A stretch of 64,000 nt of DNA. It comes from Macrostomum lignano. Taxonomy: Eukaryota. Below are positions 1-52,351 of this stretch, one piece after another. Both the position numbers and the translations under genes were made by a program. Position 1 is the first letter of the stretch. Each line of letters begins with the position of its first letter. The notes below the pieces were generated by a model. That model had not been told where the DNA came from, made no database searches, and saw only the letters and a program-made list of their open reading frames with translations. The stretch is taken from contig NIVC01000954.1 in NCBI GenBank assembly GCA_002269645.1, positions 62,001 through 126,000 on the forward strand, written 5' to 3'.

Positions 1-720
1 TGATACTTGCCGATATGTATCGTAATATTCTTTCTGCCCTAACAAATCATCTGTGCCGCACTTTCAGCTTCACTCTTACTCTTTAATAAGGTATAGAAGG
101 AAAGGAAAATTAAACAATTAATATTAAATTATATTCAAGTGAAAGAGAATTGAAAATACTAATAAATCCGTTCCTGCTAAAAAAATTAAATATAAAAAAA
201 GAACTTGGCCCACTTGGGATTCGAACCCCTGTTTAGGCCATTTACAGAGCAACTGCCTTCGGCCCCGATCCATCTCTCGCTTAAGCGAAACTCTACAGTG
301 CACGCGCTTTATATCGAATATTCCCTATGGTAGCCACTTATACGATTTTTGCTGCTTTTTCATACATTTCTGCTCGCTGCATCGCAACGCCTTAACCTAA
401 AAATACGAGTCGCATGTCGTTACAATCAAAACATCAAGGCGCATTCATCTAATTCATTTTCAAATTATGTCAACAAATTTTTTCGGCTGCTAGGCGCCAA
501 ATTATGAATTTTTACCTGTTCTGACAGGTATTCAAACAGGTATTAAGACCTGTTAACCTAAGAATCAGTTTTCAAAACTTATTTAGTTGCATAGTGCATC
601 CATAATGCTGTTTTTAGACACCAAACTTGAGTCTCTAGGTCTCGCCAATGCAGAGTTATTAGCAAAAGTATGCTCAAAATTTGCCCGAAAATGGCCTACT
701 CAAAATTCGGAGCCAATTTT

Positions 721-8751: not shown

Positions 8752-10796
8752 TTTTAGTTGAAAAATTTGCTGGTAGAAGCTGAGATTTGTAAAATGATCA
8801 GATAATTTCTTCCCCATTCTCATCCTCAATAATGTAGGTTATGGGATTTGAAGAAACTATTTTCTTTATCCTAAACACTTCTGAAATTTTCCAATAACCT
8901 CTTCGACCCTTTTCAAAGTGCTCCTTATATCTATAGATATGAACTTTGTCACCTACTTTGAAGTTTGGTTTCTCATTTGAATACTCGAAGGAAGGCTTTA
9001 GTAATCGCTCAGGATGTTTAGATGCTTCTGAAGGAGTTATCAGAATTTCAGAATGGATTGTATTGTTGTATTTTTCAACAATAGTTGGCAATATGTGGAG
9101 CCACTTCTGGTTTCCTTGTAGATCAAATTCAAACCAGAGTTTATTTGTGAGAGTACGATTGAACCTCTCAATCATTGCATTCTTGGACTCGCCATAAATT
9201 GAAAACATCTTGTTAATATATTCACCCTTTTCATCCTTCTTTCTAATGTTGTCTTTTGAAAACGAGTATAACTTGTACATATGCTGATTATAAAACTCTT
9301 TGCCTTCATCTACAAAGTCTCTCTGATCGTCTTCCTGATTCCTTAAATACTTTTTGGAAAGCTTCTGCAACTTCCGCTCCCGTCTTTGTTTTCAAAGGAA
9401 CTGCCCAGGTGTAACGTGTACAACCATCTATGATAGTGAGAGCATATTTGTAACCTCTTTCATGTGGTAGGATAATGATATCTGCATGCCAAATTGTGTT
9501 TTTTGCATAGTGAATCATTTTTCTAAACAGTCTTGGTTTTCTATATTCCCTACGCAATTTTACTGCATCTTCATAGCTAAGACCTTTTCCGTATATAGTT
9601 AGACAGTCTATACAATTGTTGGGGTTGTGAGTATGAATTCCTAATCCAAACCGAACTTTAGCATTGATAATACGCTTTACTAGATTTCTAATGAGTCTCT
9701 CCTTTACCGACAAGTCACTAGTTGGAATCGCATCTGAATCAGCTATCATTTTTTCATCAGCAATATGCTTCTTTGCTAAAGCTTCCTCTGGAGTTGAAGA
9801 CGTCTTTTTAGCATCTCTATAGTTTTTGTCATGATAATAAGCAGTCCAATCGATTGGGTTGATTGGTGGACTGTCATACCGAGGCCAGTCTGTAATTGGA
9901 TTGAGTCTTTTGTCTGGATTTGTATCAGGCAGTTGATCCTCAATCTTTCGAAAGAGGCTGGACTTTATCTTAAGGCATCATCAGGATTGACCAGATCCTT
10001 CAGCCCCACCTCCATACTCGTAAAGTCTCTGAACCTTCTCCATATCCTTGTCAACTTTAATGGACGTACCATAGGTACTCGATCAAAGATCAGACTTAGG
10101 AGCTTGGCTGCGGATTTCCACCACGTCCTCAAGCTTGTTACCGTTGGGAACAGGAATTACCTGTGTTCCTTCAGAAGATTTCTCAGCTGAAGTGGTACTT
10201 GAGGCTTTTGAAGGAGTTCCCGCAATTTGAAGGTGTCGCCATTAACTAAGCACTTGTTTAACCTTGGTTATAATGTTTGTGTATTGATCCCCATAAAGAA
10301 ATTTCAATGCAAATTCGCCTGTTACAAGGGTGATTCCATTGTCTAGTAAAATATTCTTAGGTTGGTTTTTTTATTGATGCATACATAAAACAACTGGTAG
10401 GTCGGATAAGACTTTTTATAGTCTAATCCTATATACTAAAAATGGTCTGTCTGTGTCTATCTATCTATCTATCTATCTATCTATGTGATCGATTAGAGAA
10501 AAAAATGGCTTGACCGATTTTGTTCAAACTTGCACTGTTCGATCAGAAATTTTCCCGTGACTGTACATGCATCGCGGCTAAGAAATTTCTCGATGCTAAA
10601 GGCATTAAATATTCGAAAAACATGCTTTTTTGCAAAGGTCAAGCAAACTTTTCGACTTGAAATGCATTGTAAGAATGCTAGAGAAAAAACTGACTGGTTG
10701 AATTCTGGTTCTGAAATAGATTGCATCATCACTGAATTGTAACTCCGACTTGAATTGAAAATGCAGTGTGGAAGCGTAGCACCAGACTTGATTTAA

Positions 10797-12470
10797 ATCA
10801 TAGTAGAAAATAGTTTAAATAGTTTAAAAATCATAGTAGCGTCATGTAAAAAATCGTAGAAGCGTCATATAAAAAATTATAGAAGCGTCATATAAAAATC
10901 ATAGATGCGTCATTTAAAAAATCATAGAAGCATCATATAAAAATCATAGATGCGTCATTTAAAAAACCATAGAAGCATCATGTAAACAATCATAGAAGCG
11001 TCATTTAAAAAATCATAGAAGCATCATATAAAAATCATAGATGCGTCATTTAAAAAATCATAGAAGCATCATGTAAACAATCATAGAAGCGTCATTTAAA
11101 AAAATCATAGAAGCGTCATATAAAAATCATAGATGCGTCATTTAAAAAATCATGGAAGCGTCATGTAAACAATCATAGAAGCGTCATGTGAAAATCATAG
11201 AAGCGTCACGTAAAGAATCATAGAAGCGTCATGTAAACAATCATAGAAGCGTCATGTAAACAATCATAGAAGCGTCATGTAAAAAATCATAGAAGCGTCA
11301 TGTAAACAATTATAGAAGCGTCATGTAAAAAAATCATAGAAGCGTCATGTAAACAATCATAGAAGCGTCATGTAAACAATCATAGAAGCGTCATGTAAAC
11401 AATCATAGAAGCGTCATGTAAAAAATCGTAGAAGCGTCATTTAAAAAATCATAGAAGAGTCATGCAAAAATCATAGATGCGTCATTTAAAAAATCATGGA
11501 AGCGTCATGTAAACAATCATAGAAGCGTCATGTAAAAAATCATAGAAGCGTCATATAAAAATCATAGATGCATCATTTAAAAAAATCATAGAAGCGTCAT
11601 ATAAAAAATCATAGAAGCGTCATGTAAAAATCATAGAAGCGTCATGTAAACAACCATAGAAGCGTCATGTAAACAATCATAGAAGAGTCATGTAAACAAT
11701 CATAGAAGCGTCATGTAAGCAATCATAGAAGCGTCATGTAAACAATCATAGAAGCGTCATGTAAAAAATCATAGAAGCGTCATGTAAAAAATCATAGAAG
11801 CGTCATGTAAGCAATCATAAAAGCATCATGTAAACAATCATAGAAGCGTCATGTAAACAATCACAGAAGCGTCATGAAAAAAATCATAGAAGCGTCATGT
11901 AAACAATCATAGAAGCGTCATGTAAACAATCATAGAAGCATCATGTAAAAAAATCATAGTAGCGTCATGTAAACAATCATAGAAGCGTCATGTAAAGAAT
12001 CATAGAAGCGTCATGTAAACAATCATAGAAGCGTCATGTAAACAATCATAGAAGCATCATGTAAAAAAATCATAGTAGCGTCATGTAAACAATCATAGAA
12101 GCGTCATATAAAAATCATAGATGCGTCATTTAAAAAATCATAGAAGCGTCATGTGAAAATCATAAAAGCGTCACGTAAAGAATCATAGAAGCGTCATGTA
12201 AACAATCATAGAAGCGTCATGTAAACAATCATACAAGCGTCATGTAAACAATCATAGAAGCGTCATGTAAAAAATCATAGAAGCGTCATGTAAACAATCA
12301 TAGAAGCGTCATGTAAACAATCATAGAAGCGTCATTTAAAAAATCATAGAAGCGTCATGTAAACAATCATAGAAGCGTCATGTAAAAAATCATAGAAGCG
12401 TCATGTAAAAAATCATAGAAGCGTCATGTAAAAATCGTAGAAGCGTCATTTAAAAATCATAGAAAATCAT
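10797..12470 (+). repeat. ~23-bp satellite (AATCATAGAAGCGTCATGTAAAC)n, array 1
   Basis: Direct tandem array of about 70 variable 22-24-bp units. Confidence 0.97.
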
Positions 12471-13310
12471 AAAAATCAAAAATTAAATGCAGCTATAATG
12501 CTGTGCTGGGGAGAAAAACTGAGACGTAAAGGCTCTCAGAGAATAACTGCTGAGATTACGGGGGGGGGGGTTCTGAGATGTCAAAGCAAAAGTCAGAAGC
12601 TACTTCAAAGTTCATGTACTTTACTCAATTTTTTTATTGCATTCTTTGTTGGCTCGCCACGGGAGGCGCTTATAGAAGAAGAGTCATGTAAAAAATAAAA
12701 GTAGCACTACGAGCGTATGTACGAGCTATACATAAAATAAAAGTCATGTTCAAGTTAAAAGATTCATTTGGGAATTGCTACGATGTCAAAGCTTGGTGGA
12801 AATCGTTATAGTGCTGTGATTCTTAAAGAAGGAATCACTAAAATGTCAAGGCTTAGGGGAGAAGAATTGCTGAGATTTCAAGGCTTTAGGTTGGGTTAAA
12901 GTTAGGTTTAGGTCAGGTGTGGGTTGAGGGTTATATTTTATCGGGTTTCAAGGTTAACAGAATAACAGGGGATTTTTTAGATTTCACGGTTTATGGAGGC
13001 CATCGCTGACATGTTAAGGCTTACGGGGGGAATAGCTGAGATGTCAAGGCTCACGGGGTATAAATGAGATTTCAAGGCTAAAGTCAGAAGCTACATGTAG
13101 TTTATTGAAAACTTTTTATTACATTATTTGATGCCTCCTCAGGGGAGGGATCGCTGATAAAAAAAGCGTAATGTAAAAAATAAAAGAAGCTTCATGTCGA
13201 AGTTAAGAGATTCATTTGGGAATCCCTACGATGTCGAGGCTTGCAGGAAATCGTTATAATGCTGTAGTAGTGCTATAGTGACTCTTAGAGACAATTACTG
13301 AAATTTCAAT

Positions 13311-13373
13311 GTTAGGTTAGGGTTAGGGTTAGGGTTAGGGCTAGGGTTAGGGTTAGGGTTAGGCTAGGGTTAG
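13311..13373 (+). repeat. Interstitial telomere-like (TTAGGG)n tract
   Basis: About 10 TTAGGG/CTAGGG units; a degenerate tract also at ~12885-12935. Confidence 0.9.
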
Positions 13374-14401
13374 AAGGTTGACAGATATTTTTAGATTTCC
13401 AAGGCTTATTGGGGGCATTGCTGAGATGTCAAGGGGGGAAGTTGATATGTCAAAGCTTGTGGGGGGGAATTACTGACATGTCAAGGCTTACAAGGTTTGA
13501 CAGGAGATTTTTTTAAGATTTCAAGGATACATGTAGCTTATTAAAAAAACGTGTATTGCATTTATTTGGCTCCCCAACGGGGGGCGTAGATTGCTAGTAA
13601 ATTCCTATAGTTACTTTCACGACTTGAGGAATTGTCTGTGTTATCAGAAGATTTAAGCTCTAATGCAATCTTTCGCTCAACGTGAACCAGGTCAATCTTT
13701 TTTACCTTTTCGAATCCAAAATATTTTTTCTGCTAAAACTTCATGTAGTCTACCTAGTCTTATTTGAATAACTTTAATCTTGTATGAAATTATTAGCTCT
13801 TCTTGAAATAAATCGTAAAGAATTTGGTCATACCCCACCTTGTCGTCAATTGGTTTCAAGAGAATTTCTCTAATTTTTTGCTCCATTTTTGCTTTATAAA
13901 ATTTAACAAGTGCTTATCGATCGCCCCTAAGGGACGCGAGCTCTGCTCGATGACTAGCAAGGACATTGACTTTCCTCACTTAGGCCACAAGGTAACCTGC
14001 AAAAGAATACCCTGGAATATAAAATTCTCCAGGATATTTTCCAGTAGAGAAGATGGGTGGCAGTTTTGTCATAGCTGACTGAATGTCTAATGCAGAACCA
14101 AGAAATAGTCGTTTATTGAAGGCCATTTTATAGAGATTTTTTTATTTCTTTATTTTTACTTGTAAAGTGTTTGTATAAATTCCATTGAATACTTAATAGA
14201 CTGAATTTTAAGACAAGTCGAGACAATAATCCAAAGCGACATGTTACACAGAACAGATCGCTGATAAAAGATCTTGGTATATTTTAAAAGAACCTTATAA
14301 GACGATGCATAACAATCCTTAGTCACAGTCACAATGACAATCCTTAGTCACAGTCCTTACAGTCCCCCTTAGTCACAGTCACAGTGATAGTCCTTAGTCA
14401 C

Positions 14402-15042
14402 TCATGTTGAGCAGCTTGATGTTGAGCAGCTTGGTGTTGAGCAGCTTGGTGTTGAGCAGCTTGGTGTTGAGCAGTTTGGTCTTGAGCAGCTTGGTGTTGA
14501 GCAGCTTGGTGTTGAGCAGCTTGGTATTGAGCAGCTTGGTGTTAAGCAGCTTGGTGTTGAGCAGCTTGGTCTTGAGCAGCTTGGTGTTGAGCAGCTTGGT
14601 ATTGAGCAGCTTGGTGTTAAGCAGCTTGGTGTTGAGCAGCTTGGTGTTGAGCAGCTTGGTGTTGAGCAGCTTGGTGTTGAGCAGCTTGGTATTGAGCAGC
14701 TTGGTATTGAGCAGCTTGTCTTGAGCAGCTTGGTCTTGAGCATCCTCGTATGTCGGAGGTGCCTCTGGAACGTCTACATCTAGCGAGCGCTCGATTTCTA
14801 GTTGGCGTTGATTTTCAAAGATAGAACGCTCCTTCGCAATGTTTTTTTTTAATTAGTCTAAGCATCGCTATGTCGTTCTCAATTTTGTTGAAGTGTACGC
14901 GATACTGCTCAAGGAATTGATTCTCATTCATAGACGTGACGAAGCTAGCATCGGGGTATTGTGTGTGAATCAAACCTCTCAAATTGTTTCTCTCTTGTGT
15001 GCTCACAAGTATTCTAGCACGCCTAGTTGGATTTCCGGGCAT
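14402..15042 (-). CDS. Unknown ORF MPGNPTRR... ending in a 15-bp minisatellite encoding (HQAAQ)n; copies 15973-16545 and 22876-23494
   Basis: Present in all three units with indels. The GAGCAGCTTGGTGTT minisatellite has about 17-22 units, differing between copies. Confidence 0.5.
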
Positions 15043-16935
15043 TCTGTTCGTTCGGAATGAAAGCTGATAATTTAAGCAGAGGACACTTGTTGTGGATACT
15101 TTATTTTGGGTATGCCCTTAAGTGCTGTCTAAAATGTCTTATGCCAGCCGCTAATTGGGTGCCACTGCCCTGCCACTGCCTTGCCACTGCCCTGTTACTT
15201 TCACGACTTGAGGAATTGTCTGTGTTATCAGAAGATTTAAGCTCTAATGCAATCTTTCGCTCAACGTGAACCAGGTCAATCTTTTTTACCTTTTCGAATC
15301 CAAAATATTTTTCTGCTAAAACTTCATATAGTCTACCTAGTCTCATTTGAATAACTTTAATCTTGTATGAAATTATTAGCTCTTCTATAAATCGCAAAGA
15401 ATTTGGTCATACCCCACCTTGTCGTCAATTGGTTTCAAGAGAATTTCTCGAATTTTTTGCTCCATTTTTGCTTTATAAAATTTAACAAGTGCTTATCGAT
15501 CGCCCCTAAGGGACGCGAGCTCTGCTCGATGACTAGCAAGGACATTGACTTTCCTCACTCAGGCCACAAGGTAACCTGCAAAAGAATACCCTGGAATATG
15601 AAATTCTCCAGGATATTTTCCAGTAGAGAAGATGGGTGGCAGTTTTGTCATAGCTGACTGAATGTCTAATGCAGAACCAAGAAATAGTCGTTTATTGAAG
15701 GCCATTTTATAGAGATTTTTTTATTTCTTTATTTTTACTTGTAAAGTGTTTGTATAAATTCCATTGAATACTTAATAGACTGAATTTTAAGACAAGTCGA
15801 GACAATAATCCAAAGCGACATGTTACACAGAACAGATCGCTGATAAAAGATCTTGGTATATTTTAAAAGAACCTTATAAGACGATGCATAACAATCCTTA
15901 GTCACAGTCACAATGACAATCCTTAGTCACAGTCCTTACAGTCCCCCTTAGTCACAGTCACAGTGATAGTCCTTAGTCACTCATGTTGAGCAGCTTGATG
16001 TTGAGCAGCTTGGTGTTGAGTAGCTTGGTGTTGAGCAGCTTGGTGTTGAGCAGTTTGGTCTTGAGCAGCTTGGTGTTGAGCAGCTTGGTGTTGAGCAGCT
16101 TGGTATTGAGCAGCTTGGTGTTAAGCAGCTTGGTGTTGAGCAGCTTGGTGTTGAGCAGCTTGGTGTTGAGCAGCTTGGTGTTGAGCAGCTTGGTATTGAG
16201 CAGCTTGGTATTGAGCAGCTTGTCTTGAGCAGCTTGGTCTTGAGCATCCTCGTATGTCGGAGGTGCCTCTGGAACGTCTACATCTAGCGAGCGCTCGATT
16301 TCTAGTTGGCGTTGATTTTCAAAGATAGAACGCTCCTTCGCAATGTTTTTTTTAATTAGTCTAAGCATCGCTATGTCGTTCTCAATTTTGTTGAAGTGTA
16401 CGCGATACTGCTCAAGGAATTGATTCTCATTCATAGACGTGACGAAGCTAGCATCGGGGTATTGTGTGTGAATCAAACCTCTCAAATTGTTTCTCTCTTG
16501 TGTGCTCACAAGTATTCTAGCACGCCTAGTTGGATTTCCGGGCATTCTGTTCGTTCGGAATGAAAGCTGATAATTTAAGCAGAGGACACTTGTTGTGGAT
16601 ACTTTATTTTGGGTATGCCCTTAAGTGCTGTCTAAAATGTCTTATGCCAGCCGCTAATTGGGTGCCACTGCCCTGCCACTGCCTTGCCACTGCCCTGTTA
16701 CTTTCACGACTTGAGGAATTGTCTGTGTTATCAGAAGATTTAAGCTCTAATGCAATCTTTCGCTCAACGTGAACCAGGTCAATCTTTTTTACCTTTTCGA
16801 ATCCAAAATATTTTTCTGCTAAAACTTCATATAGTCTACTTACTTACTTACTTACTTACTACTGACGGGGGGCGCAGGCGCCGCGAATAGGCCGCGAGGC
16901 CCCTATCGCAACCCCAAGGTAAAAGAGCACAAGGA

Positions 16936-22021
<5,086 letters not shown>

Positions 22022-23672
22022 TTAGCCAGCAGCCAACTACTTAGCAGCCACCTGCCCCGCAAAAAAGCAGCAGGGGGGATCCGTCCCCCACCAGCAGACC
22101 AAGACGAGGAAGCTAGCCGCTTCCACGCCAGGCCAGAACGAAAAGGAGGGGGAAGAGCCTCCTCGAAAAACGAAAAGCTGGCGGATGTCACAGAGTCCCT
22201 CGGTTTAAGTTGCCGTTTGCCCCCCTTCATATAGTCTACCTAGTCTCATTTGAATAACTTTAATCTTGTATGAAATTATTAGCTCTTCTATAAATCGCAA
22301 AGAATTTGGTCATACCCCACCTTGTCGTCAATTGGTTTCAAGAGAATTTCTCGAATTTTTTGCTCCATTTTTGCTTTATAAAATTTAACAAGTGCTTATC
22401 GATCGCCCCTAAGGGACGCGAGCTCTGCTCGATGACTAGCAAGGACATTGACTTTCCTCACTCAGGCCACAAGGTAACCTGCAAAAGAATACCCTGGAAT
22501 ATGAAATTCTCCAGGATATTTTCCAGTAGAGAAGATGGGTGGCAGTTTTGTCATAGCTGACTGAATGTCTAATGCAGAACCAAGAAATAGTCGTTTATTG
22601 AAGGCCATTTTATAGAGATTTTTTTATTTCTTTATTTTTACTTGTAAAGTGTTTGTATAAATTCCATTGAATACTTAATAGACTGAATTTTAAGACAAGT
22701 CGAGACAATAATCCAAAGCGACATGTTACACAGAACAGATCGCTGATAAAAGATCTTGGTATATTTTAAAAGAACCTTATAAGACGATGCATAACAATCC
22801 TTAGTCACAGTCACAATGACAATCCTTAGTCACAGTCCTTACAGTCCCCCTTAGTCACAGTCACAGTGATAGTCCTTAGTCACTCATGTTGAGCAGCTTG
22901 ATGTTGAGCAGCTTGGTGTTGAGCAGCTTGGTGTTGAGCAGCTTGGTGTTGAGCAGTTTGGTCTTGAGCAGCTTGGTGTTGAGCAGCTTGGTATTGAGCA
23001 GCTTGGTGTTAAGCAGCTTGGTGTTGAGCAGCTTGGTGTTGAGCAGCTTGGTGTTGAGCAGCTTGGTATTGAGCAGCTTGGTGTTAAGCAGCTTGGTGTT
23101 GAGCAGCTTGGTGTTGAGCAGCTTGGTGTTGAGCAGCTTGGTGTTGAGCAGCTTGGTATTGAGCAGCTTGGTCTTGAGCAGCTTGGTCTTGAGCATCCTC
23201 GTTTGTCGGAGGTGCCTCTGGAACGTCTACATCTAGCGAGCGCTCGATTTCTAGTTGGCGTTGATTTTCAAAGATAGAACGCTCCTTCGCAATGTTTTTT
23301 TTAATTAGTCTAAGCATCGCTATGTCGTTCTCAATTTTGTTGAAGTGTACGCGATACTGCTCAAGGAATTGATTCTCATTCATAGACGTGACGAAGCTAG
23401 CATCGGGGTATTGTGTGTGAATCAAACCTCTCAAATTGTTTCTCTCTTGTGTGCTCACAAGTATTCTAGCACGCCTAGTTGGATTTCCGGGCATTCTGTT
23501 CGTTCGGAATGAAAGCTGATAATTTAAGCAGAGGACACTTGTTGTGGATACTTTATTTTGGGTATGCCCTTAAGTGCTGTCTAAAATGTCTTATGCCAGC
23601 CGCTAATTGGGTGCCACTGCCCTGCCACTGCCTTGCCACTGCCCTATGGCAGTGACAGATTTTTTCTCTCTA

Positions 23673-23780: not shown

Positions 23781-24148
23781 ATCTTCTACACTGGAAAAAA
23801 GGGGGAAGTCTCGAGATTGCACTTTGAATATCTATTCAATTGCCAAAATAAATAGTTTTTCTAAAAGCCATTTTTACTATGATATTTTGGTAAAAATTAT
23901 TGTGCCAAGGAGCTAATTAAAAGAGAAAAATGAAGATAAAAGTAATTTTTTCAATCCAAAGATGATAACTTGGCTCAGTTTGAGCTTTGTTAATGATAAA
24001 TGTGTATTTCTTCATAAATATGTTTTGTATACTACTTTGAGTAGCAGCGAAAGCAGTAAAAGCATTTTTTCATGTTAAGTCATTTTTTTCTGGATCTCCA
24101 GAAATTTTTCTGGACATTTTTATCATAAGGAATTCTTTCTCTTTACAG

Positions 24149-26299: not shown

Positions 26300-27700
26300 A
26301 AAACGAGGACTATGATTCTTAGTACAAGGAAGCACTCATACTCCGCGACATAGACAGTGGTGATGAAATGTACAAAGTATTCACTGATTGGTCAAAAGTA
26401 AATTATAATAAGTTCGATTTCGAGTCATGTAAAAAGGTGTGGAATAGCACCAGTACCAGCTCTGCTGATGCACAGGACAGACTTACTGTCGGTACGTTGA
26501 AGAAAATGGGCTAGTGAAGAAAACTATGGTAAATATAAGGAATGGAAAATCAAATATGATTACTATGGTAGGATTGAGTATCTTGATGATAATTTCACTG
26601 AATTTAACATAACCAACTTTGTTTATGAATATAAGAAGAATAATATTATTTACAATAGCGATTGTATTTACTATTTTGATGATGAGAAGTAGAGAGAACT
26701 AATTAGTATAAATGACATATTTCTTAAAATATCAAATCTTGTTAGCAGTGAGTTAAACCACCGAAAGACTAGACTCGAAGTTGCAATTAGGAGGGCTGAT
26801 GATAAAGAGAAGTTAAAAGCACTTGAAAAGAAACTACAGAGTACAATGAAGAATATAAATTCAATACAAGGAGCCAACAAGCTCAAACAGGTAACTAATT
26901 TGTTCAAAGAGAGGTTTACTAACAATGAAATTGAATTCGATATGAAATGGAATTTGCTAGGGTTTAACGATGGAGTATATGATCTCGCTACAGGTGAGTT
27001 TCGCAAGCATAGATATGACGATTACGTTACTAAATCGGTGGGATATAATTACTCGGATATACTTAAAGTGAGTGATGACGACTATGAGTTCATTGTTAAT
27101 CTTCATAACCAAATTCATCCCGATCCAGAAAATAGAAAGAGTTGGGAATCCGTTATAGCCACAGCTCTAATGGGAAAGAATGTTGAAAACTTTATAATGT
27201 TTGATGGCGCTGGTGGAAATGGCAAGGGGGTTGAGGACAACCTACTTCTTAGAACTCTAGGATCTGATTATGCAGCACCACTGAGTCCTGATGTTTTTGA
27301 ATTCACCAATAAGAATAGACAAGCCACAACCTGCCCTAGCACAAATTAATAAAAAGAGTTTGGTTAACAGTCTATTCTTAGACTGCGTTCTTAGTCTATT
27401 CAGTCTATTCTTAGTCTATTCTTGGTCTTGAACAACGCATCAATAAAATTACTAACTGGTGGGGGAGTTATTAAAGCTAGAAATTTATATTCAAGCCAGT
27501 GTAATGTTGTTTTACACGGAACCCTAATAGTCGAATGTAATAACAAGCCCAAATTTAGACAAAATATTGGAGATGCAGAAAAAAGACGAATTATAAATAT
27601 TAATTACCCATGCAAATATACAACAGATACCGACATCATTGATCATTAGAAACACATTTATAAAGCCGATTATAAGGAAAGATATAGACGAACGATAAAT
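26300..27700 (+). pseudogene. D5/P4-type primase-helicase remnant (PriCT-2-like, D5_N, SF3 helicase)
   Basis: DYDS*...DWSK...CKKVWNS...LTVGTLKK; NLLGFNDGVYDLATGEFR; Walker A GAGGNGKG; IKLLTGGGVIKARNLY; ECNNKP; RRI. Multiple stops and frameshifts. Confidence 0.85.
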
Positions 27701-42149: not shown

Positions 42150-45100
42150 GCACAAATTTGCTAAAACCGTCCGGCACTCCTAAGGCGTGTCCCAAGAAGA
42201 AAAGCAGCTTAAGAATAGCCAGCTCAAGCGTTGTGGCGTGCGGCGGATGCGGCGGGAGGGCATGGGCCATAAGTGAGATCCTCCGTTGCGGCAGCTCGGA
42301 AATGTTCTCTAATGCCTTTGGGCCATTTACGGCAGAGCTGGCCCTTGAGCCCGGACGCTAGCAGAAGTTCCGTAAGCGCGGCGATGGCTTTTTCGCGATC
42401 ACTCTGGGCCGCAGCATCCATCACTTGAGGCCGAGTGCCTCTTGATCACTTGATTGCCTCTGCTAATTCTGTTCTACTGAAAAAGCGGGGCGGCGACGGC
42501 ACTGGCGACGGTCGGCGGAAGCGCGGAGTCGGCGGCGTGGGCGGCGTCGGGAAATCGTCCAGATTTATAGTATCCGGTTGAGGCGGCGGTGTCAACACGC
42601 CCATATACTGCCCCGGCGGCGGCGAGAGTGGCTGAGGTGGCGTGTCCAACGCATCAACTCTCGGGTCTAGCAGCACTGGTGGAGCTGCCTTTGGCGAAAC
42701 TCGAGCGTTAGTGGCCAAGAGGTCTTGCAGCGCTGGGAGCTGCTCTTCTCCAGGTTCCTCTTGCAGGGAGCTCGACAGGCTGCCTATGAGGTCGAACACA
42801 CTTTCGGCTTCGCTCGGACGCTGATTAATTGGCGAGTTCTGTGCCGGTGGCTCAGCTGGCGGCTGTGCCGGTGGAGGTGTAGACCGGACAGGCGTGGTTG
42901 GATTGTCAGTAGCCGGTAGTCCGGCGTCAGCCTTGATCGCATGAGGCGGATCCAGTCGGAGCCTAATGACGGCGGCGCGTTCCCTGGCGACCGCAAGGCG
43001 CTCGCCGAGGTGAGGCGGCTGCAGCGGAGCCAGCCTGTGCACCTCGATTCTGGCTTCTTGACGCGGATGCTCGTCCCAGCGGCTCCGTCGACGGCGAGCC
43101 GGATCTTGGCTGGGCACTGGGATTAATCTAATCCTGCTGGCTGGCCGCAAGGGTTGCGTGCGCTTACGGCCACTGGCCGGTGAGGGTGTCCTTGATGGTT
43201 CCCGATCTCGGCGCCTCTTATTTTCTTTGCCCGTCATTTTTGCTTTTAGTTTTGCTTTTCAGCGCTGGAACAGGCACGAGGCCGGTGGAAAAAGTGAATT
43301 AATCGGCTCAAGTAGGACTTTGACTTTGGTTTAAGAACCAAGCGGTCAGGTTCCCTTCGAGCCCTAACTGGCCTGTCATTGACGGCCCATTCGGCTTGAC
43401 TGGTTGATTGGCCGACAAAACATGACTATGACATAGATTATACCTATCAGAGTCTAAGTTAATCCTATCGCTATTTCTATTTTCAGGTCGCCTCAGCGGT
43501 TCAACTGTAGGAGCGGATGGAGCGTCGCAAGAATCATACGGCAGTGACTCAAGCTCTACTGTCCTCTCCATAACTTCAGGTTCGTGGATGCGGACTTCAG
43601 CTGGACGTGCGCTTGGCTGAGTGGCTGATAGGAGTCGCCAGCGATAGGCGGGTCTCGTGTCCATGTCGTCTTCTTTATCAGAGTCCTCAGAGATGGCGGG
43701 GAGTGTCGCGGCTCCGGCGTCAACCTGTCGAACTCGGCGTTGCTGCTTCGGTTCAGCTGGCCCTTCGAGATCTGCAATTGGATAATCTGAAGTGGGCACA
43801 AGGAGGTTTCGGCGATGAACTACCATCTCGTCCGGTCGTTCTCGAGGGTGTCGAACCTTCCGTCGAATCTTGTAGACGACTTCTCCTTTGCTTTCCACCA
43901 CTTCATACAACGATCTCCTTGGCCTGTGAAATTTTACTGCTTCGTCTTCGTGTAGGACCGGGTTGTTCAAGAAAACGAGATCTCCCGACTGTAGCTTCTT
44001 AGCTGCTGGTCGGTTCTCGTAGTGTTCGTCTCGCGCTTGCTGATGCAGGCCTAGCTGTTCCTTGGCGAGGTCCGTGGCGTGCTTGAGGCGTTGCTGAAAC
44101 TCTGCGACGTAGTTAGGCAGGTTGGCATACTCCGGGAGTAGCTTCAATGAGTTGTCGAAAGGCATCCTGTATTCTCGGCCGTAGACTAAGAAGTAAGGCG
44201 TATAGCCTGTGACTGGATGAACGCTGGATCGGAGAGCAATCATGCACGCTGGCAGGAATGTGTCCCAATCGCGATGATCATGCTCGAGGAGACACGTAAG
44301 AATGCTGTTGATCTGCTTATTCAAATTTTCTACCAGTCCGTTAGACGCTGAATTGTACGGCGTGGTTGTCGTGTGCCTGATCGCGTAGAGATCACAGAAC
44401 TTTTTGAAGGCGTTTCCTGTAAAGTTCGTGCTAAAGATATCGGAAACTTTGATGTCGCACAGCAGAGTGTCAGGATGTATCGATGACCTCCTTTAGACGG
44501 TTGCGCAATCGGTCCGATCACATCCATGTGAAGTTTTCCAAAAAGTTTGCAGACTGGAAAACTCTGCACTGGCACTTGCTGTTTTCGTCGTGACTTGCTC
44601 TCTAGGCAGGTTCGGCATTTGCTGACGTAGGTCTCAACAGCTTGGACTAGACCTGCTCGCCAGAATCTTTCGCGCACACGTTGGGCGGTCTTCCGCTGTC
44701 CTTGGTGTCCTGCTAAAGGCGAATTGTGGAGCTCGTTAAAAACTTCGTCGTCGAGTGCTTCCAATAAGACAATCTTCGGCGGAGTGTCTTTTTCCTTCAT
44801 GTTGATCATGAGTAGATCTCGCTCGAGGAATAGTAACTCGTAGTATCCTAGCAGATTCCGTTGCTCTCTGCTAAGTCGTAATCGATCGTCAAACGCTGGT
44901 TTCGGTTGATTCTCCTTGATCAACTTGTAAACGTAGCCAATAGCTGGGTCATCCTCTTGAGCTTTGATGAGCTTGTCGCGCGGCAATGGCGGCTTCAGAT
45001 GATCCGTAAGCAATGCTAGGCAGCGCGGCAGACTTTGAGAAGTTGCGAGCTGGGGAGATGCTTCAGCTGTACGTACTCTGTCTTCCTCGTATGCAGACTT

Positions 45101-48100
45101 CGTCACCTCTGCATAGGAACGCTTCGTTTTCGGCGTAGGACGAAGGCGCGTCATGGCGCCAAACATATCGTCCACGCGTTGATAATGGGTGGTCGGCTGC
45201 AGGCTCATGGAAGAGCAACGAGACGGCTCGACCTGCTGAGTCTGTCGGCTCATGGGAGAGCAGCGGGACTCCTCAGCGGTAAATTTTCGACCGAGATCTG
45301 AGTAGTGGCGCTCGACTGGGAGGGCTGCTGGAGCGGTGGCCTCCAAATCTTCGTCCAAGTCAGTCTCCAAACTCTGTAGGTAGACCTGATGGCTGTCGTG
45401 GAAGAAGGCTGATGGTACAGTGGCTTCTCAAACTTCATCCAGGCTGGTCTCCTTGAAGTGACGGCGAGCGTGGGTGGCTCGGCAGAGGGCTGCTGGTGCG
45501 GTGGCCATCCAAGCTGTCTTCATCCAAGCTTCCTGTCTCCGGGCGTCGACGTGAACAGTGGAGAACTCGGCAGAAGGCTGCTGGTGCGGTGGCCTCTGGT
45601 TCGTTGTCCAAGTCGGTCTCTGCCTCTGGATCGCGATTGTGGGTCTCGATTGTGAGGGCTGCTGGTGCGGTGGCCTCTGAATCGATGCCCGGATTAGTTT
45701 CCTTAATGTGGCGGCACTCACACTGGGTGTTGTCTCCTGTCTCCTCGCGGTGCAAGCCAGGACAGCGTCGACGTCTTGGAGTACTCCGTAATCGCATTCT
45801 AACGGAGTCGTGTCCGGGCGTCTTGATAGTGCGTCGGCGTTGGTGTGGTCAGTACCCTTGCGATGGGAGATGATGAACTGAAATTCGCTGATCCTCTGGA
45901 CCCATCGACCTAGAATCCCTGTAGATTCAGTCTGACGTAACAGCCAGAGCAAGGCCTTATGGTCGCTTCTTACTTCGAATTTTTTTCCTATTAAGTATTC
46001 TCGAAAGTGTCGCATGGCATCGACAATAGCCAGTAGCTCCCGCTTGGTGACCGTGTAGCGAACTTCCGGGTTACGGAGCTTGCGACTGAAAAATGCGATC
46101 GGTCGTTCTAATCCATCGGATTGTAGTTGTCCTAGACATGCACCGATTCGGGTGTCGGATGCGTCGGTATCCAGGATAAACTTGACCTTCGGATCCTCAG
46201 TGAACTCTGGGAGGGCGAGTACTTCAGTTGAGCATAGCTTGCTCTTCAGAGTCTCAAAGGCAGTCTGATGCTGCTGCGTCCAATGACGCTGGAATCCTTG
46301 CAGGTCCTTGCGTGTCAATGCGTGTAACGGGGCCGCGATGCCCGAGTAATCTTCGACGAACTTCTTGTAGTAATTGGCGAGACCAAGAAAGCTTCGTAGT
46401 TTACGAACAGTCCAAGGCGTTGGCTAACTGCGTATCTGCGCGATCTTGTCTTTACTGGTTCGTAGGCCTTCCGGTGTAACCACGTGGCCTAGATAATGGA
46501 GCTCCTTTTTGAATAAATGGCATTTTTTCGGTTTTAGCTTCAAGTTGGCGGCTATAATTCGATTTAGGACTTGTCGTAGACGGTCTAAGTGATCTTCGAA
46601 TGTCACTGCGTGTACAACGATATCGTCCGTGTAACCAAGAGCGGCCTGCGGTGCTAGTCCTTCAAGCAGTTGGTTGATACTACGCTGGAACGATCCGGGG
46701 CTTTCAGTTAGTCCCATTGGTAGCACCTTGAAGCAAAATTGTCCCCGATCGAGCACAGGGAAGGCAGTGATGTCCTAGTCTTCCTCGCGGAGAGGGATCT
46801 GGTAGAAGCCTTGTACCAGGTCGAGGCTTGAATACCACTGCGCTCCTTTAAGTTTGGCGAAGGTTTCCTGAATGCGCGGGATCGGGTACGGGTGCTTCAG
46901 CGTCACTTCGTTGATTGCTCTGAAGTCGTGCACAATGTGAATCGTCTTGTCCTTCTTTGGTACTAGGATCATCGGTGAATTGTAGCTGGAGTACGTTGGC
47001 CGTATGATGCCTTTCTTCAGCATATCATCGAGCATCTGATCCAGTTGCGGTCGTAGATTCGGAGGTATCCGGCGAGGAGGAATCGCGATTGGTGTCGAGT
47101 CTGTGAGCACAATCTCATGAGTTACCAGGTGTGTCAGTCCGTGGTCCAACGGAGTTAGGGAGAATGCCTTCTCGCATTCCTTGAGTAGATCTTGAACCTG
47201 GAGCCTATGGTGGCCGTTCAGCTGGTCTCCGACGTCGACCTCGTTGATCCAACTGTCAGTCGTTTCTTCAGTCGTTATCATTTGACGAACTTCTGGCTCA
47301 TTTGACTCGCTGAAGTACTCGAGGTCCTGGGTCTTGAGTGGCGTAGCTACTCCCATTAGCATGTTGCGACGCAAGTGAACCTCTGTATCTGATAGGTTGA
47401 GTACTTCCGTCACTCCTCGACCTGTCATCGTATGCAGGACCGGGGCTGCGTCTAACTGGTGATGCTTCGCTCGCAGTCCTGATTTGAGTGGTTCGATAAT
47501 CATCGGTGAACCGTAGTTCTGCTGATGACCTTCGGCTAGCTTAATGGCGACGAGGCAGGAACATTGAGGCGGCAGAATGCATTTTTTCAGCGACGTACAC
47601 TCGGCAGGCCCTCAGTTCTCTCCTTGAATAGCGTACCGGAAGTCGGGTGCCTTGTCGGAATGTGAGCATTCCTTGCTGGAAGTCCAGTCGTTGGCAATGA
47701 CTCCGGATGAAATCAATTCCTAAAAGATTCTCACAGTCTCCTTCGGCGACGAAGAATTCGGTTTCCGCGACATAGTCCCCGAATTCAATTGATAGGGTAA
47801 CCTTGGCGGTGAGACTTAACTCGTCCCATCGTACATGGCGACTCGGTTAGGGTAAGCAGGTGCAACTATACAACGTGGTGAACGACGCCTAATAGCGGCC
47901 CAAGTGGTCGCTCCGAGAAAGTTTCTTCTGCTTCCGCTGTCTAGCAGAAAGGTGACATCTCGTCGAGCCACTCGTCCTGTAATAAATGGGTCGGCGTCAC
48001 GCGCATGGACTGTATTTACAAAGGAGGCGTCCACGAAACCTCCATCCAACGTTTCCTCGTTTACTGACGACTTGGACGAGTCAGCTGCCGCGGCTGCGGG

Positions 48101-49466
48101 GCCATACTCTTCCAGGGCGTGTTCGGTGTCGGCTGCATAGCCTGGGCTGGAGCTCGGGGGGGGGGCGTTGCCGTTTACGTCCTCCGGCCGGCCGTTTCCC
48201 GTAAACTGCTGAGTTGATTGGCGTCTATGCGGACAATCTCTCGCCTTGTGTCCTTGATTACACTCGTAGCACGTGTAGTGCGGCGGTCGGTTCGCTTGAC
48301 CGTTCACTTGATTGGCTGTGACTTGCTGAGCCAACGTGTTGAGTAGATGCTGCTGCTGCTGCATTATTGCAGCTTGTTGCTCAACGACTTTTTCCAACTT
48401 CGAAAGGGCGCTGTTGTTGGGCTCCTTTGAGGCTTGTCCCTCCCCGTCCAACATTTTGACCGGGGGCTCTTTCGAACTATGAGCCAGGTGTTGGGCTAGT
48501 TCCATCCTCTTCAGTGTTTGCAAGGCTTCGCTGAGTGTCGTAGGTCGGATCCAGAAAAGTTTCTCGCGGCAGTCTGATGACGTGCCGATCCCGCGCAGGA
48601 ACTGGTCAATCAGCTCTTGCTCTAGATGTCGAGGCTCGAGCCAAGGGAAGGCTTGCTCTCCTAGCTCCTGCAGAGCGTCTGCGTAATCTTCCGTTGACTC
48701 GTTCTTGCGCTGACTGCAGCCTCTGAATTCTTCTCGATACTCGTCAGGTCCTGAGAGTCGTGCGAATCTCTCTATTAGTCGTTGCTGAAGCTGTCGATAG
48801 GTGATGCGGTCGGGCAGCCTCATGCGAAGTACCGCAGCGTAGGCCGAATTTAAGTCTAAATTCGCCAGCAATTGGGCCTTCTTGTCGTCTTCATCCTGTA
48901 GATCTTCTGCTTCGCAGCGTAGGTCGCGTATATGGTGGCGTAAAGATGATGGCGTATAGCTCTTCATCTTGTCCTGCTTCTTAGGCTGTAGATCTAGCCG
49001 ACGTTGCATGGCCTGCAGCATCCTGCGGATCATGTCCGGGTTGGTGTCGCGTCCGAGGTTGTTGAGTCCTGCAAATAGATCTTACTCCTCCTCTTCTCCT
49101 GAGTCATCCCTAAAATTAATCCTCTACCGCATGGTATGGCTGAACCTGCAGCAGCTGCGGCGGAGTTTCCGTTGTCCTGACGCGTGTGCTGTTGATCACC
49201 GATTAAATCTTCTCGATCACTGTCGTGAGACATCTTGATACTAACTTAGTCGTGGTAGGCGTGACTGATGACGTTGCCGAAAGGGTGATAGTTGAGTGAC
49301 GTTGACGTCGATTCGGTGACGTTCTCCTGCTTGCTTGCCAATCTCGTATCTCGAATGTCGTATCCCGAATCTCGAATCTCGAATCATTTGTCTCGAATCT
49401 CGAATCCTTTGTCTCGAATCTCGAATCCCTTGTCTCGAATCTCGAATCTCACCGCTGTGCCACCAG
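42150..49466 (-). mobile_element. Degenerate Ty3/Gypsy internal region: gag-protease, RT, RNase H, integrase and an extra 3' ORF
   Basis: Gag 47816-49033 with CYECNQGHKARDC and LDSGS; RT LDLVQGFYQI and YTDD; RH TDASD, RELLAI and SDHKAL; IN HNSP..GH...CRTC, MDVIGP and NGLVENLN. Order RT-RH-IN; many stops. Confidence 0.92.
49443..49465 (-). promoter_or_regulatory. Primer-binding site, tRNA-Leu-like
   Basis: TGGTGGCACAGCGGTGAGATTCGA lies 1 nt inside the LTR end (...TAACA). It resembles the complement of a tRNA-Leu 3' end with a 2-nt insertion. Confidence 0.65.
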
Positions 49467-51718: not shown

Positions 51719-52351
51719 CGAGGGGTGTCTGGGAAATAGTGTTACTTTTACTTGTAGCGGACGTTTGGTAAGTTGCATTGACACAAGTTTGGTGTCGTTT
51801 GAAAAAGACAAGCCTCTTCTTTAAAATGACAAACTGTGATCGATTTGAATTTGATTTCAAGAGATTGTGCACGTAAGTAGAGGGAGATCGATTTTAGACT
51901 TACAGAACCTAGATACAAGCTTTCTGGATAGACGATCCAGTTTCATGTCCTCAGTAAGCCGTCAGGGAACCCAACGGGCACTCAGCTTGACATGATCCAT
52001 CTTTTGCAGACACCTGTAAACTGTGGACTTTGAGCAATCTAGTCTATCGGCTATTTCGCAGATGCTTTGGCGGCAGTCTTCATTGATCAAGTCGAGAATG
52101 CAACCCATTAGGCTGCTACTGTCACAGATCTCAAGGCATCCTATCCTAACAAGGCTCACGTCAGTTCTTCCACCCTTGAACTCGTTCACCCGCCTGTTCA
52201 TTGTCATCTTGCTGACGCAATGGTCGCCATGCGCAGTGCCGAATTGCCTGTGAGTACCAGCAGTTTCGCACCTGGAGCTCCAAAGCGGAAAAAAGTCGTG
52301 ATACAAACAAAGCGAGAAGACTACGAAGTCTACTGTTGACATCTTTGTCAA
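51719..52351 (-). mobile_element. Internally deleted mariner element: one TIR plus transposase N-terminus
   Basis: TA|CGAGGGGTGTCTGGGAAATAG terminus; FKGGRTD...CEIADRLDCSKSTVY...KLSARWVP motif. Confidence 0.85.

Follow-up and report, generated by a model that had tools for sequence, protein, structure and literature searches.

Free-standing homing and "collaborative homing" in phages are typified by the seg and mob genes of T4 and by the cyanophage psbA intron with its neighboring endonuclease. As generally understood, these systems resemble the locus described here in that a nuclease gene lies beside its presumed target gene, the intron splits the cut site, and enzymes of one family are found in both positions, within the intron and adjacent to the gene. 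They differ in that the enzymes are of the GIY-YIG or HNH type and belong to bacteriophages, whereas the present one has a restriction-enzyme fold and belongs to eukaryotic virus-like elements.

A restriction-enzyme fold encoded within a group I intron is known from I-Ssp6803I, a homing endonuclease of the PD-(D/E)xK type whose intron lies in a cyanobacterial tRNA-fMet gene (Zhao et al. 2007, cited in PMC3424549). I-Ssp6803I is bacterial, belongs to family PF11645 (matched by 0/22 of our relatives) and has a target of approximately 17 bp or more; the present nuclease, by comparison, belongs to the Eco47II family, is hosted by a eukaryotic virus-like element and probably has a short site. The Eco47II family has been listed as bacterial only (PMC3424549). 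Its homologues are linked to GGNCC and a C5 methylase (PMC10305163), and EcoO109I cleaves RG^GNCCY (PMC3089450). With the Eco47II/Sau96I-type enzymes and EcoO109I (PF09553; PDB 1wte) the nuclease shares its sequence family, fold and D...ExK motif, and the insertion point of its intron lies inside GGNCC, the target linked to that family (PMC10305163, PMC3089450). It differs from them in that no partner methylase was found in the short contigs and in the position of its gene, which is inside an intron or directly upstream of the presumed target. Self-splicing introns are also found in other small integrating dsDNA virus-like elements of eukaryotes: the group I introns of polinton-like viruses interrupt a short gene lying upstream of the capsid gene, with no intron-encoded endonuclease annotated, and the homing endonuclease genes reported are GIY-YIG and HNH (PMC12220804). 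The intron described here, by contrast, splits a phospholipase-A2 (PLA2)/integrase gene and carries a nuclease.

The intron and its host gene

The window analyzed is a 64,000-nucleotide stretch of Macrostomum lignano contig NIVC01000954.1. On its reverse strand a group I intron splits the PLA2/integrase gene of a decayed polinton-like element (Table 1). The group I core beside the nuclease is borne out by Rfam, where Intron_gpI (RF00028) scores 74.3 bits at 9939-10305 against a gathering score of 50; the scores of the window, L001, L002, L006 and L007 range from 74 to 87 bits (relatives up to 86.8), and the window core scores on a par with those of the intact relatives. Compensatory changes affect 28 of the 63 predicted core pairs. 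The P1-P2 assignment made by Rfam (10244-10305) is spurious: it falls within the end of the nuclease reading frame, and the intron-less alleles place the true 5′ part of the intron at 13887-13994.

The 5′ exons end in ...GGU and a terminal G closes the introns in the window, L001, L006 and L007. We propose by eye that P1 pairs exon CAGGU with the internal guide sequence GCCUG in L001 and L006, with one mismatch in the window; P2, likewise assigned by eye, is kept despite changed sequence in L001, L006 and L007. Its score, covarying P3-P9 core, exon-terminal U and terminal G thus mark the window intron as group I, and self-splicing is predicted. As present, it measures 4065 nt, compared with 825-837 nt in intact related introns. 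The boundary with exon 1 was set by comparing the intron-less L065 with the intron-bearing L006. Exon 2 matches rve (E 3.7e-8) and Phospholip_A2_4 (E 0.002) and is a pseudogene, with one frameshift and one premature stop close to its end. The host is a polinton-like or adintovirus-like integrating element that has decayed within a eukaryotic genome.

Table 1. Features of the intron, its nuclease pseudogene and its host gene in the window
Feature	Position	Strand	Evidence or remark
Exon 2: remaining PLA2 domain (HDxxY), rve integrase core, C-terminal domain	8762..9929	-	Pfam
Complete group I intron, including nuclease pseudogene and inserted repeats	9930..13994	-	Rfam, nhmmer
Intron catalytic core P3-P9	9930..10243	-	Rfam, nhmmer, covariation
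Eco47II-like PD-(D/E)xK nuclease pseudogene, start to stop codon (ATG 13884-13886, stop 10242-10244)	10242..13886	-	Fragment alignments, Pfam, homologue search
3′ arm of ORF-closing 12-bp stem	10249..10260		Encodes last nuclease codons (...KQVLS*)
Intron 5′ part: internal guide sequence, P2 hairpin, two small extra hairpins, 5′ arm of ORF-closing stem	13887..13994	-	
5′ arm (RNA sense) of ORF-closing 12-bp stem	13905..13916		Inverted-repeat search
Exon 1 of PLA2/integrase gene, duplication unit 1 copy; 44 codons, ...GYSFAG, last codon GGT	13995..14126	-	Homologous to L001 exon 1
Duplication unit 2: exon 1 (15574-15705), intron 5′ part, partial nuclease (15194-15465)	15194..15705	-	
Duplication unit 3: exon 1 (22477-22608), intron 5′ part, partial nuclease	16697..22608	-	

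The nuclease pseudogene

The initial annotation described an open reading frame at 10242-13916. This stretch is not open: the nuclease copy joined to the core contains two frameshifts and one repeat-rich insertion of approximately 3.1 kb, and inserted satellite DNA therefore makes up most of the 3.7-kb span. No in-frame stops were seen in the aligned parts. Tandem duplication has left two further partial copies in the window, both of which lack the 3′ half of the nuclease; no intron core was found in either unit. The copy in unit 2 has one frameshift, which it has in common with that in unit 3, and the latter is also interrupted by a LINE retrotransposon. The window gene is dead, and the nuclease system is extinct in the window.

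Single reading frames of the window fragments contain the string ...KKIDLVHVERKIALELKSSDNTDNSSS..., in which the D, E and K of the catalytic triad are kept. The motif reported earlier, ID-x9-ELK followed by NTDNSSS, is present, although with the spacing D-x10-ELK. A search with a 68-residue single-frame fragment returned 22 homologous proteins with E-values down to 1.1e-21, which on sequence similarity places homology far beyond chance, and intact relatives were found in metagenomes. The gene is small (about 150-190 amino acid residues) and of the Eco47II family. Residues G, E and K do not vary in the alignment of the relatives, and D, L, D and N hardly do; the resulting pattern is D-x10-ELK...NTDN.

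PF09553 (RE_Eco47II) matches 20 of the 22 intact relatives at E<=0.01 (best E 2.4e-11), in agreement with the Eco47II-like resemblance that had been suggested; the window fragments themselves match weakly (E 0.0025 and 0.022; 14.8 and 17.9 bits). Against the curated cut-off of 25.9 bits, the intron-borne P0001 and P0004 fall below (20.9 and 18.6), whereas the free-standing P0003, P0005, P0019 and P0022 (31-34) and giant-virus members (39-47) lie above it. Since the intron-borne members match the profile most poorly, their specificity may have changed. Apart from RE_Eco47II, Pfam scans of the window fragments and 22 relatives gave two weak single matches; none of the described homing endonuclease families (LAGLIDADG, GIY-YIG, HNH, His-Cys box, PF11645, Vsr-like EDxHD) was found in them, as had been stated of the first three and His-Cys.

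An AlphaFold model of the relative P0002 (pLDDT 93.2, pTM 0.87) was compared with the PDB using Foldseek. The top match was EcoO109I (probability 1.0, TM 0.60, 12% sequence identity), followed by BamHI, McrC, Hef/XPF, Mus81 and BbvCI. Together with the D...(D/E)xK triad of the alignment, the model indicates the PD-(D/E)xK fold of type II restriction enzymes, as was originally surmised.

Placement within the intron

The reading frame is housed in a peripheral hairpin located between P2 and P3, with the core directly after it; this is the placement of a homing endonuclease, in a peripheral loop of a group I intron with the catalytic core intact. The perfect 12-bp stem said to loop it out, with a 3′ strand formed by its own last codons, was recovered (Table 1); the inverted-repeat search lists it as 15 nt, 93% complementary. 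By itself it is not beyond chance, since the same 4.3 kb contain another perfect 12-bp inverted repeat, where by our own estimate approximately 0.5 is expected. Support comes from its position and from stems of differing sequence that flank the reading frame at the same place in related introns: 12 bp in L001, 9+4+7 bp in L006 and a weaker 6 bp in L007. The P2.1 helix UUGCUA/UGGCGA proposed previously can be drawn in the window, but its pairing is not kept by the relatives; what they conserve is a helix that opens directly after a conserved GCUA and closes directly before the 5′ strand of P3.

Settings in which relatives occur

The relatives fall into three settings: giant-virus bins, where they are paired with C5 methylases; a free-standing position upstream of an intron-less PLA2-integrase gene; and the interior of the same group I intron. 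The last comprises L001, L002, L006, L071 and L007, so that homologues do co-occur with group I cores, a point on which the initial annotation had called for a check. Roughly half of the close relatives are not intronic but free-standing, and lie directly upstream of the PLA2-integrase in fixed synteny (L003, L005, L084/L085 and L086). L001 and L086 open with terminal repeat or hairpin sequence immediately upstream.

The giant-virus homologues (54 loci, GVMAG L008-L061) are 28-43% identical. C5 methylases adjoin the nuclease in all ten loci tested, and these relatives are true restriction-modification pairs. They differ from the element-borne nucleases in that no introns were found in the 15 loci scanned and no PLA2-integrase gene near the nuclease loci, and in forming a separate clade in the neighbor-joining tree, in which intron-borne and free-standing forms are interleaved. 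The methylase neighbor of a type II restriction-modification system is a property of the giant-virus homologues only: tblastn with three giant-virus C5 methylases gave no match in either the window or the element contigs, which at 0.7-4.9 kb show a small part of each element and are partly redundant.

The insertion site

The exon ends read GGT and CCN in every intron-bearing allele. The insertion point, GGT|CC, always falls in the Gly-Pro codons of a PLA2 loop and constitutes a GGNCC site, the target of Eco47II-type enzymes. An intron-less target, which had been predicted, exists naturally: L065 is approximately 96-97% identical to L006 (flanks 94.8% and 97.1%) and lacks exactly the 825-nt intron between GGT and CC. 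L071, alongside L006, has the intron at the same site. Close alleles thus differ in the presence of the intron at one precise site, the pattern looked for in a homing endonuclease. All four intron-bearing lineages represent one homologous insertion site, and the coincidence with GGNCC therefore counts once, not four times.

The Gly-Pro pair is kept in 12/12 nuclease-less alleles for which 500 nt or more upstream are available. Among free-standing carriers with a readable site, three of four have Gly-Val or Gly-Ala in its place; L084 is a counter-example, its nuclease gene being free-standing and its Gly-Pro pair retaining GGGCC.

The pooled element contigs (54.6 kb) contain GGNCC 25 times against 58 expected (first-order Markov; the statistics ignore relatedness), and CCNGG 99 times against 58. 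The PLA2 site accounts for 17 of the 25, and elsewhere in these elements GGNCC is approximately 7-fold depleted. In at least nine intron-less contigs the Gly-Pro pair is the sole GGNCC, and none was found anywhere in the intron-bearing contigs. The depletion is family-wide and includes contigs with no visible nuclease gene.

Proposed mechanism and alternatives

The window contains a dead Eco47II-family nuclease gene in an intron. The explanation that we consider best, and hold to be somewhat probable, is that in living relatives this gene would serve as the homing endonuclease of the intron. The presumed specificity, GGNCC, is carried over from the name of the family and from the structural match at 12% identity. 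The enzyme would recognize a GGNCC-containing site, namely the Gly-Pro codons (GGT CCN) in the YxGPG calcium loop that PLA2 conserves, and would cut it in intron-less elements when two elements share a cell. Repair off the intron-bearing copy would then install the intron together with the nuclease gene, and insertion between GGT and CC would destroy the site and render the carrier immune. A short restriction-type site would be tolerable because GGNCC has been purged from the rest of the element genomes, the Gly-Pro pair being the one exception, held by protein function. The enzyme is probably derived from giant-virus restriction-modification pairs, from which it would have passed to a free-standing position beside the target gene and from there into the intron.

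Among the considerations against homing, known homing enzymes, to our knowledge, use long sites, and one of 5 bp would also cut host DNA. Since about half of the close relatives stand free beside the PLA2-integrase, the enzyme may serve the element rather than the intron.

Developed fully, the latter consideration makes the nuclease a weapon or defence of the element, a restriction enzyme without a methylase, made safe by the purging of GGNCC from the element and directed at the co-infecting giant virus, the host or rival elements; the intron would be a secondary "safe harbour," spreading, if at all, without the help of the nuclease. The fixed synteny with the beginning of the PLA2-integrase, the interleaved tree, the family-wide depletion, the intact site beside the L084 nuclease gene and the small restriction-like enzyme, from whose fold a short site is probable, all agree with this. 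A phage intron endonuclease acting in virus-virus competition has been described (PMC11620839). What such a role leaves unexplained is why the nuclease-carrying intron sits exactly in a very rare GGNCC, why nuclease carriers tend to lose the Gly-Pro pair, and why a close allele (L065) is missing exactly the intron. We regard it as rather unlikely as the explanation; it and homing are, moreover, not mutually exclusive.

A further alternative, which seems to us quite improbable, is that the enzyme has another, perhaps longer specificity, and that the insertion-site GGNCC and the depletion of GGNCC arose independently: every Gly-Pro pair necessarily reads GGNCC, and the depletion would be due to pressure exerted by Eco47II-like restriction-modification systems in the giant viruses that the elements encounter. 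The depletion could indeed equally represent escape from such systems, given the number of giant-virus loci with homologues, their methylase neighbors and the depletion in contigs that show no nuclease gene; the divergence of the intron-borne members from the Pfam profile points the same way. By chance, however, an insertion point would fall inside GGNCC in well below 1% of cases (25 sites across 54.6 kb of AT-rich DNA), and the element clade, and largely the wider family too, share the NTDNSSS block and the invariant residues.

That the nuclease instead assists the PLA2-integrase as a housekeeping partner (in end processing or integration, for example), and is neither a homing nor a restriction enzyme, is very hard to credit: its constant synteny with the integrase gene at the element end and the terminal sequences in L001 and L086 would suit such a role, but no end-processing role is known for the Eco47II family, and 12 related PLA2(-integrase) contigs that extend 500 nt or more upstream have no nuclease gene, which makes it dispensable and patchy, like selfish genes.

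Implications

Homing in the living relatives remains the reading that we prefer; they point to an intron homing enzyme of a new type, aimed at the Gly-Pro pair that the intron splits, and no description of such a system was found in the literature searched. Its several parts may be joined, tentatively and with more doubt than homing itself, into a single account in which, within eukaryotic virus-like elements, a short-palindrome restriction enzyme has turned into a homing endonuclease, GGNCC is avoided genome-wide except at one site, and the intron is both immunity and vehicle. If this is true, the sole unavoidable GGNCC would be the Gly-Pro pair in the catalytic loop of the essential PLA2-integrase, and the intron would at once be an immunity device that splits the site and the means by which the nuclease spreads. 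In that case the three settings would preserve the whole path from a restriction-modification system to a mobile intron.

The nuclease pseudogene and its surroundings

The window consists of genomic DNA from a eukaryote, in which repeats and mobile elements of several kinds occur, among them the remains of a virus-like element. The nuclease gene, described in the initial annotation as an ORF, is discontinuous: the copy joined to the intron core contains two frameshifts and one insertion of approximately 3.1 kb, made up of TCTA microsatellite sequence, about 72 copies of a 23-bp satellite, and TTAGGG-like repeats. Its host, the PLA2-integrase (phospholipase A2/integrase) gene of a polinton-like element, is also broken, with one frameshift and one premature stop near the end, and its conserved loop motif carries a substitution.

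A 1.58-kb segment, which runs from the upstream gene through exon 1 and the 5′ part of the intron into the nuclease gene, of which it covers the first half, occurs as three tandem copies; a LINE splits the third. The entire window contains only one intron core; the two partial copies were considered as independent introns and rejected, as they lack a core and are products of this tandem duplication. In every duplication unit, an ORF of 136-190 aa (MPGNPTRRARILV...) lies upstream of exon 1; it shows a weak Pfam match to pentapeptide repeats, and its repetitive tail (...LLNTK...) is a 15-bp microsatellite. Pfam analysis of ten further ORFs in the window yielded nothing useful. The D5-like primase-helicase fragments probably also derive from a virus-like element. 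A tblastn search of the window for the packaging ATPase and capsid-like genes which neighbor the PLA2-integrase gene in related contigs gave no matches, so that the rest of the element is untraceable here. The window copy of the nuclease-intron system is extinct, that is, dead and rearranged, and taken alone is a modest result.

Coordinates of features in the window
Feature	Position	Strand	Remarks
PLA2-integrase exon 1	starts at 14126	-	44 codons, ending ...GYSFAG
PLA2-integrase exon 2	resumes at 9929	-	Phospholip_A2_4, E 0.002; retroviral-type integrase core (Pfam rve), E 3.7e-8
Intron 5′ splice site	13994/13995	-	placed by intron-less alleles
Nuclease reading frame	start 13886, stop 10242-10244	-	not continuous
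12-bp inverted repeat	13905-13916 / 10249-10260		perfect
Hairpin stretch	13917-13951	-	about 35 nt; two small G+C-rich hairpins
TCTA microsatellite	10456-10484		
23-bp satellite	10826-12464		about 72 copies, 89% matches; inside the span of the nuclease gene
Relatives of the 23-bp satellite	three other places, including about 39.6-41.1 kb and 58.6-61.2 kb		
TTAGGG-like hexamers	13311-13373		
Tandem 1.58-kb segments	13610-23645		94-99% identical
15-bp microsatellite	14405-14750, 15984-16255, 22887-23195		tail of the upstream ORF
Exon 1-like remnant	about 23790-23880	-	fourth, degenerate; just past the array
LINE (non-LTR retrotransposon)	16936-21871	-	52-59% GC vs ~37% in surroundings
LINE ORF1	20753-21871	-	assigned by eye
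LINE AP-endonuclease part	20181-20753	-	assigned by eye
LINE ORF2	16936-19947	-	1003 aa; by eye, looks like RT with RNase H-like end
D5-like primase-helicase fragments	26846-27649	+	D5_N, E 1.5e-12
Helicase-like piece	27422-27649	+	next ORF after D5_N; by eye, without Pfam match
Ty3/gypsy-type LTR retrotransposon	42446-49033	-	gag, RT, RNase H, integrase zinc-binding domain; GC ~52%
OTU-like cysteine protease; small transposase-type helix-turn-helix ORF	62735-63283; 51962-52351	+; -	in the order listed; protease match weak (E 7.5e-4)

Nuclease family and fold

A 68-aa stretch of one reading frame (15194-15397, minus strand), used unrepaired as the query, gave no match in a word-indexed protein search; PDB sequence searches with this fragment and with the family profile, and a search of NCBIfam, were equally empty. 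A full HMMER scan of 1.84 billion representatives reveals 22 proteins of 107-232 aa (E 1.1e-21 to 8e-4), whose alignment has invariant G, E, and K residues and almost invariant D, L, D, and N residues. The catalytic motif of the window copy had been read as ID-x9-ELK followed by NTDNSSS; ELK and NTDNSSS are present, and the spacing is corrected to D-x10-ELK. Twenty of the 22 relatives match the Pfam family RE_Eco47II (best E 2.4e-11), which the window fragments match weakly.

One relative, P0002, was modeled using AlphaFold with the alignment of the relatives, and the model is confident (pLDDT 93.2, pTM 0.87). Among solved structures, EcoO109I, a type II enzyme, matches it best (E 3.2e-4, probability 1.0, TM 0.60), followed by the DdmD nuclease domain, BamHI, McrC, Hef/XPF, Mus81, and BbvCI; the viral structure library gave at most weak, generic PD-(D/E)xK matches. 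In both sequence and fold, the window nuclease family groups with the Eco47II-type restriction enzymes. The Eco47II family has been placed in the PD-(D/E)xK superfamily, where it is listed as bacterial (PMC3424549), and with these family and fold matches the resemblance to Eco47II named in the initial annotation proves correct.

Intron structure and placement of the gene

A group I core lies between the two exons (Rfam 74.3 bits; gathering score 50), the 5′ exon ends in U, and the terminal base of the intron is G. The P1-P2 region assigned by Rfam (10244-10305) was rejected as the 5′ end of the intron, as it falls in the end of the ORF. By eye, the exon end CAGGU can pair with intron GCCUG to form P1 in L001 and L006 (metagenome contigs carrying related loci), and with one mismatch in the window. 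Four distinct intron cores align well, with compensatory changes in 28 of the 63 predicted pairs, and the P2 pairing is kept across the introns while its sequence changes. Relative to its three counterparts, the window core is longer by about 32 nt in one peripheral helix.

The 12-bp inverted repeat proposed to loop out the ORF does exist, and the end of the nuclease gene forms its 3′ arm. Taken alone it is not improbable, since another perfect 12-bp pair is found in the same 4.3 kb. Comparison of the four introns confirms that the ORF is looped out of a peripheral helix, which in each case opens immediately behind a conserved GCUA and is closed directly ahead of P3. The stem sequences vary, and the stem lengths are 12 bp in both the window and L001, 9+4+7 bp in L006, and 6 bp in L007. 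The pairing UUGCUA/UGGCGA, put forward as P2.1, was rejected as a conserved helix, since L006 and L007 do not maintain it. The hairpin stretch, situated between the conserved GCUAGUC and the 12-bp stem, is absent from L001. The intron-borne relatives have conserved C-terminal tails because their reading frame extends into the intron core.

The insertion site and avoidance of GGNCC

Contig L065 is an intron-less counterpart of L006: it lacks the 825-nt intron, exactly between GGT and CC, and matches L006 at 94.8% and 97.1% identity in the two flanks. Since the exon ends are GGT and CCN in the window, L001, L006, and L007, the Gly-Pro codons in the YxGPG calcium loop of PLA2 spell GGTCC in the uninterrupted gene. 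Eco47II homologues are linked with the target GGNCC (PMC10305163), and the site of EcoO109I has a GGNCC core which is cut after the first G of the core (PMC3089450). Every Gly-Pro codon pair reads GGNCC, and the protein thus fixes the site.

In 54.6 kb of pooled, partly redundant contigs, GGNCC was observed 25 times where a first-order Markov model predicts 58, and is the rarest pattern of its type; CCNGG was observed 99 times (58 expected). The PLA2 Gly-Pro site accounts for 17 of the 25 and is the sole GGNCC in at least nine intron-less contigs, and the intron-bearing contigs contain none; all related contigs are short. Gly-Pro is kept in 12 of 12 nuclease-less alleles having at least 500 nt of upstream sequence, and among the carriers of a free-standing nuclease with a readable loop, three have Gly-Val or Gly-Ala and one (L084) has Gly-Pro; a Fisher test on these counts gives ~0.007, with contigs taken as independent despite their relatedness and redundancy. 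L084 breaks any rule that free-standing carriers always lack the site, and is the only case seen of such a gene together with an intact Gly-Pro site. This contig stops two bases past the intron insertion point, inside an intact GGGCC (734-738), possibly owing to an assembly break at a polymorphic intron site.

Settings of the relatives

One enzyme family is found in three settings: paired with a methylase in giant viruses, alone next to the presumed target, and within a group I intron that splits it, the latter two both in polinton-like elements. IMG/VR yielded 54 homologous loci (28-43% identity), mostly in giant-virus metagenome bins. A C5 cytosine methylase is encoded next to the nuclease in all ten loci examined (E about 1e-77 to 1e-83), and the nucleases score 39-47 bits, above the Pfam cut-off. 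No group I intron was found in the 15 loci scanned, nor a PLA2-integrase gene within 10 kb of the nuclease loci. These are ordinary restriction-modification pairs.

The free-standing genes (L003, encoding P0002; L005, P0005; L084/L085, P0006; L086, P0007) are located immediately upstream of a PLA2(-integrase) gene that has no intron, and overlap it by a few bases. Upstream of its nuclease gene, L003 also carries a ClpP-like protease fragment (2-157, minus strand; E 3.1e-9). The intron seen in the window recurs (Rfam 74-87 bits) in L001/L002, whose nuclease (P0001) shares 75% identity with the window fragment, in L006/L071 (P0004), and in L007 (P0011). Some nuclease homologues thus co-occur with group I cores, and others are free-standing or methylase-paired. 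In a simple neighbor-joining tree without support values, the giant-virus enzymes form their own clade, and intronic and free-standing forms are intermixed in the element clade.

In related contigs, the neighbors of the PLA2(-integrase) gene are a gene for a Pox_A32-type packaging ATPase (E 1.7e-9) and one that may encode a double-jelly-roll protein (E 0.007, below cut-off). Contig L001 opens with a 152-nt fold-back (1-152; DNA fold -47.8 kcal/mol, z -11.7), located ~170 nt upstream of the PLA2-integrase start, which could be a hairpin end of the element (parvovirus-type PLA2) or an assembly artefact. L086 opens with short direct repeats. The packaging ATPase, possible jelly-roll protein, and L001 fold-back fit a polinton-like or adintovirus-like virus. 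Scanning metagenome contigs with a PLA2-integrase alignment revealed 22 more loci; IMG/VR searches with one PLA2-integrase protein and with an alignment gave no matches. Adintoviruses are known to carry PLA2 genes (PMC8502044), and polinton-like viruses have been reported to contain group I introns, with no intron endonuclease annotated (PMC12220804).

Proposed homing and its alternatives

The specificity, cleavage, and homing of the nuclease are inferred. In living relatives it would cut intron-less elements in or close to the Gly-Pro GGNCC, and an intron-bearing copy would serve as the template for repair, so that intron and nuclease spread jointly; the inserted intron, by splitting the site, would protect its carrier. 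On balance we lean toward this as the likeliest mechanism. Homing endonucleases and restriction enzymes have long been supposed to share ancestry. To our knowledge clear intermediates are rare, and I-Ssp6803I, a bacterial enzyme with a long target, is the one well-studied homing enzyme with a restriction fold. It is the closest precedent for intron-encoded homing use, although its family differs from that of the window nuclease. The pair of free-standing and intronic nucleases recalls the "collaborative homing" of phages, and the intronic gene may have evolved from a free-standing one, and that in turn from a restriction-modification pair.

The nuclease could instead be chiefly a restriction weapon of the element that lacks a methylase and is merely lodged in the intron, which we consider rather unlikely. 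The defining methylase of a restriction-modification system was not found for the element nuclease in a tblastn search of the window and the short element contigs, and such a pair in the window was rejected, the methylase search there being empty. Polinton-like elements are believed to encounter giant viruses in the same cells; that the depletion of GGNCC arises from giant-virus restriction, and that the true site of the enzyme differs, is improbable in our estimation. A housekeeping role is rated lowest, as highly improbable, because the nuclease gene is missing from many related contigs.

In a literature search outside of which most subscription journals lay, neither an Eco47II-like intron endonuclease nor a group I intron in a PLA2-integrase gene was found. 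The value of the window copy is as a pointer to intact relatives and to a prediction testable with sequence data. If homing is indeed what these enzymes do, they would add a new homing-endonuclease family, and would include, within the searchable literature, the first intron-encoded endonuclease assigned to a group I intron of such an element. They would also show how a short-site enzyme is tamed through site avoidance, and would provide a concrete case of an intron protecting the one site not removable by mutation.
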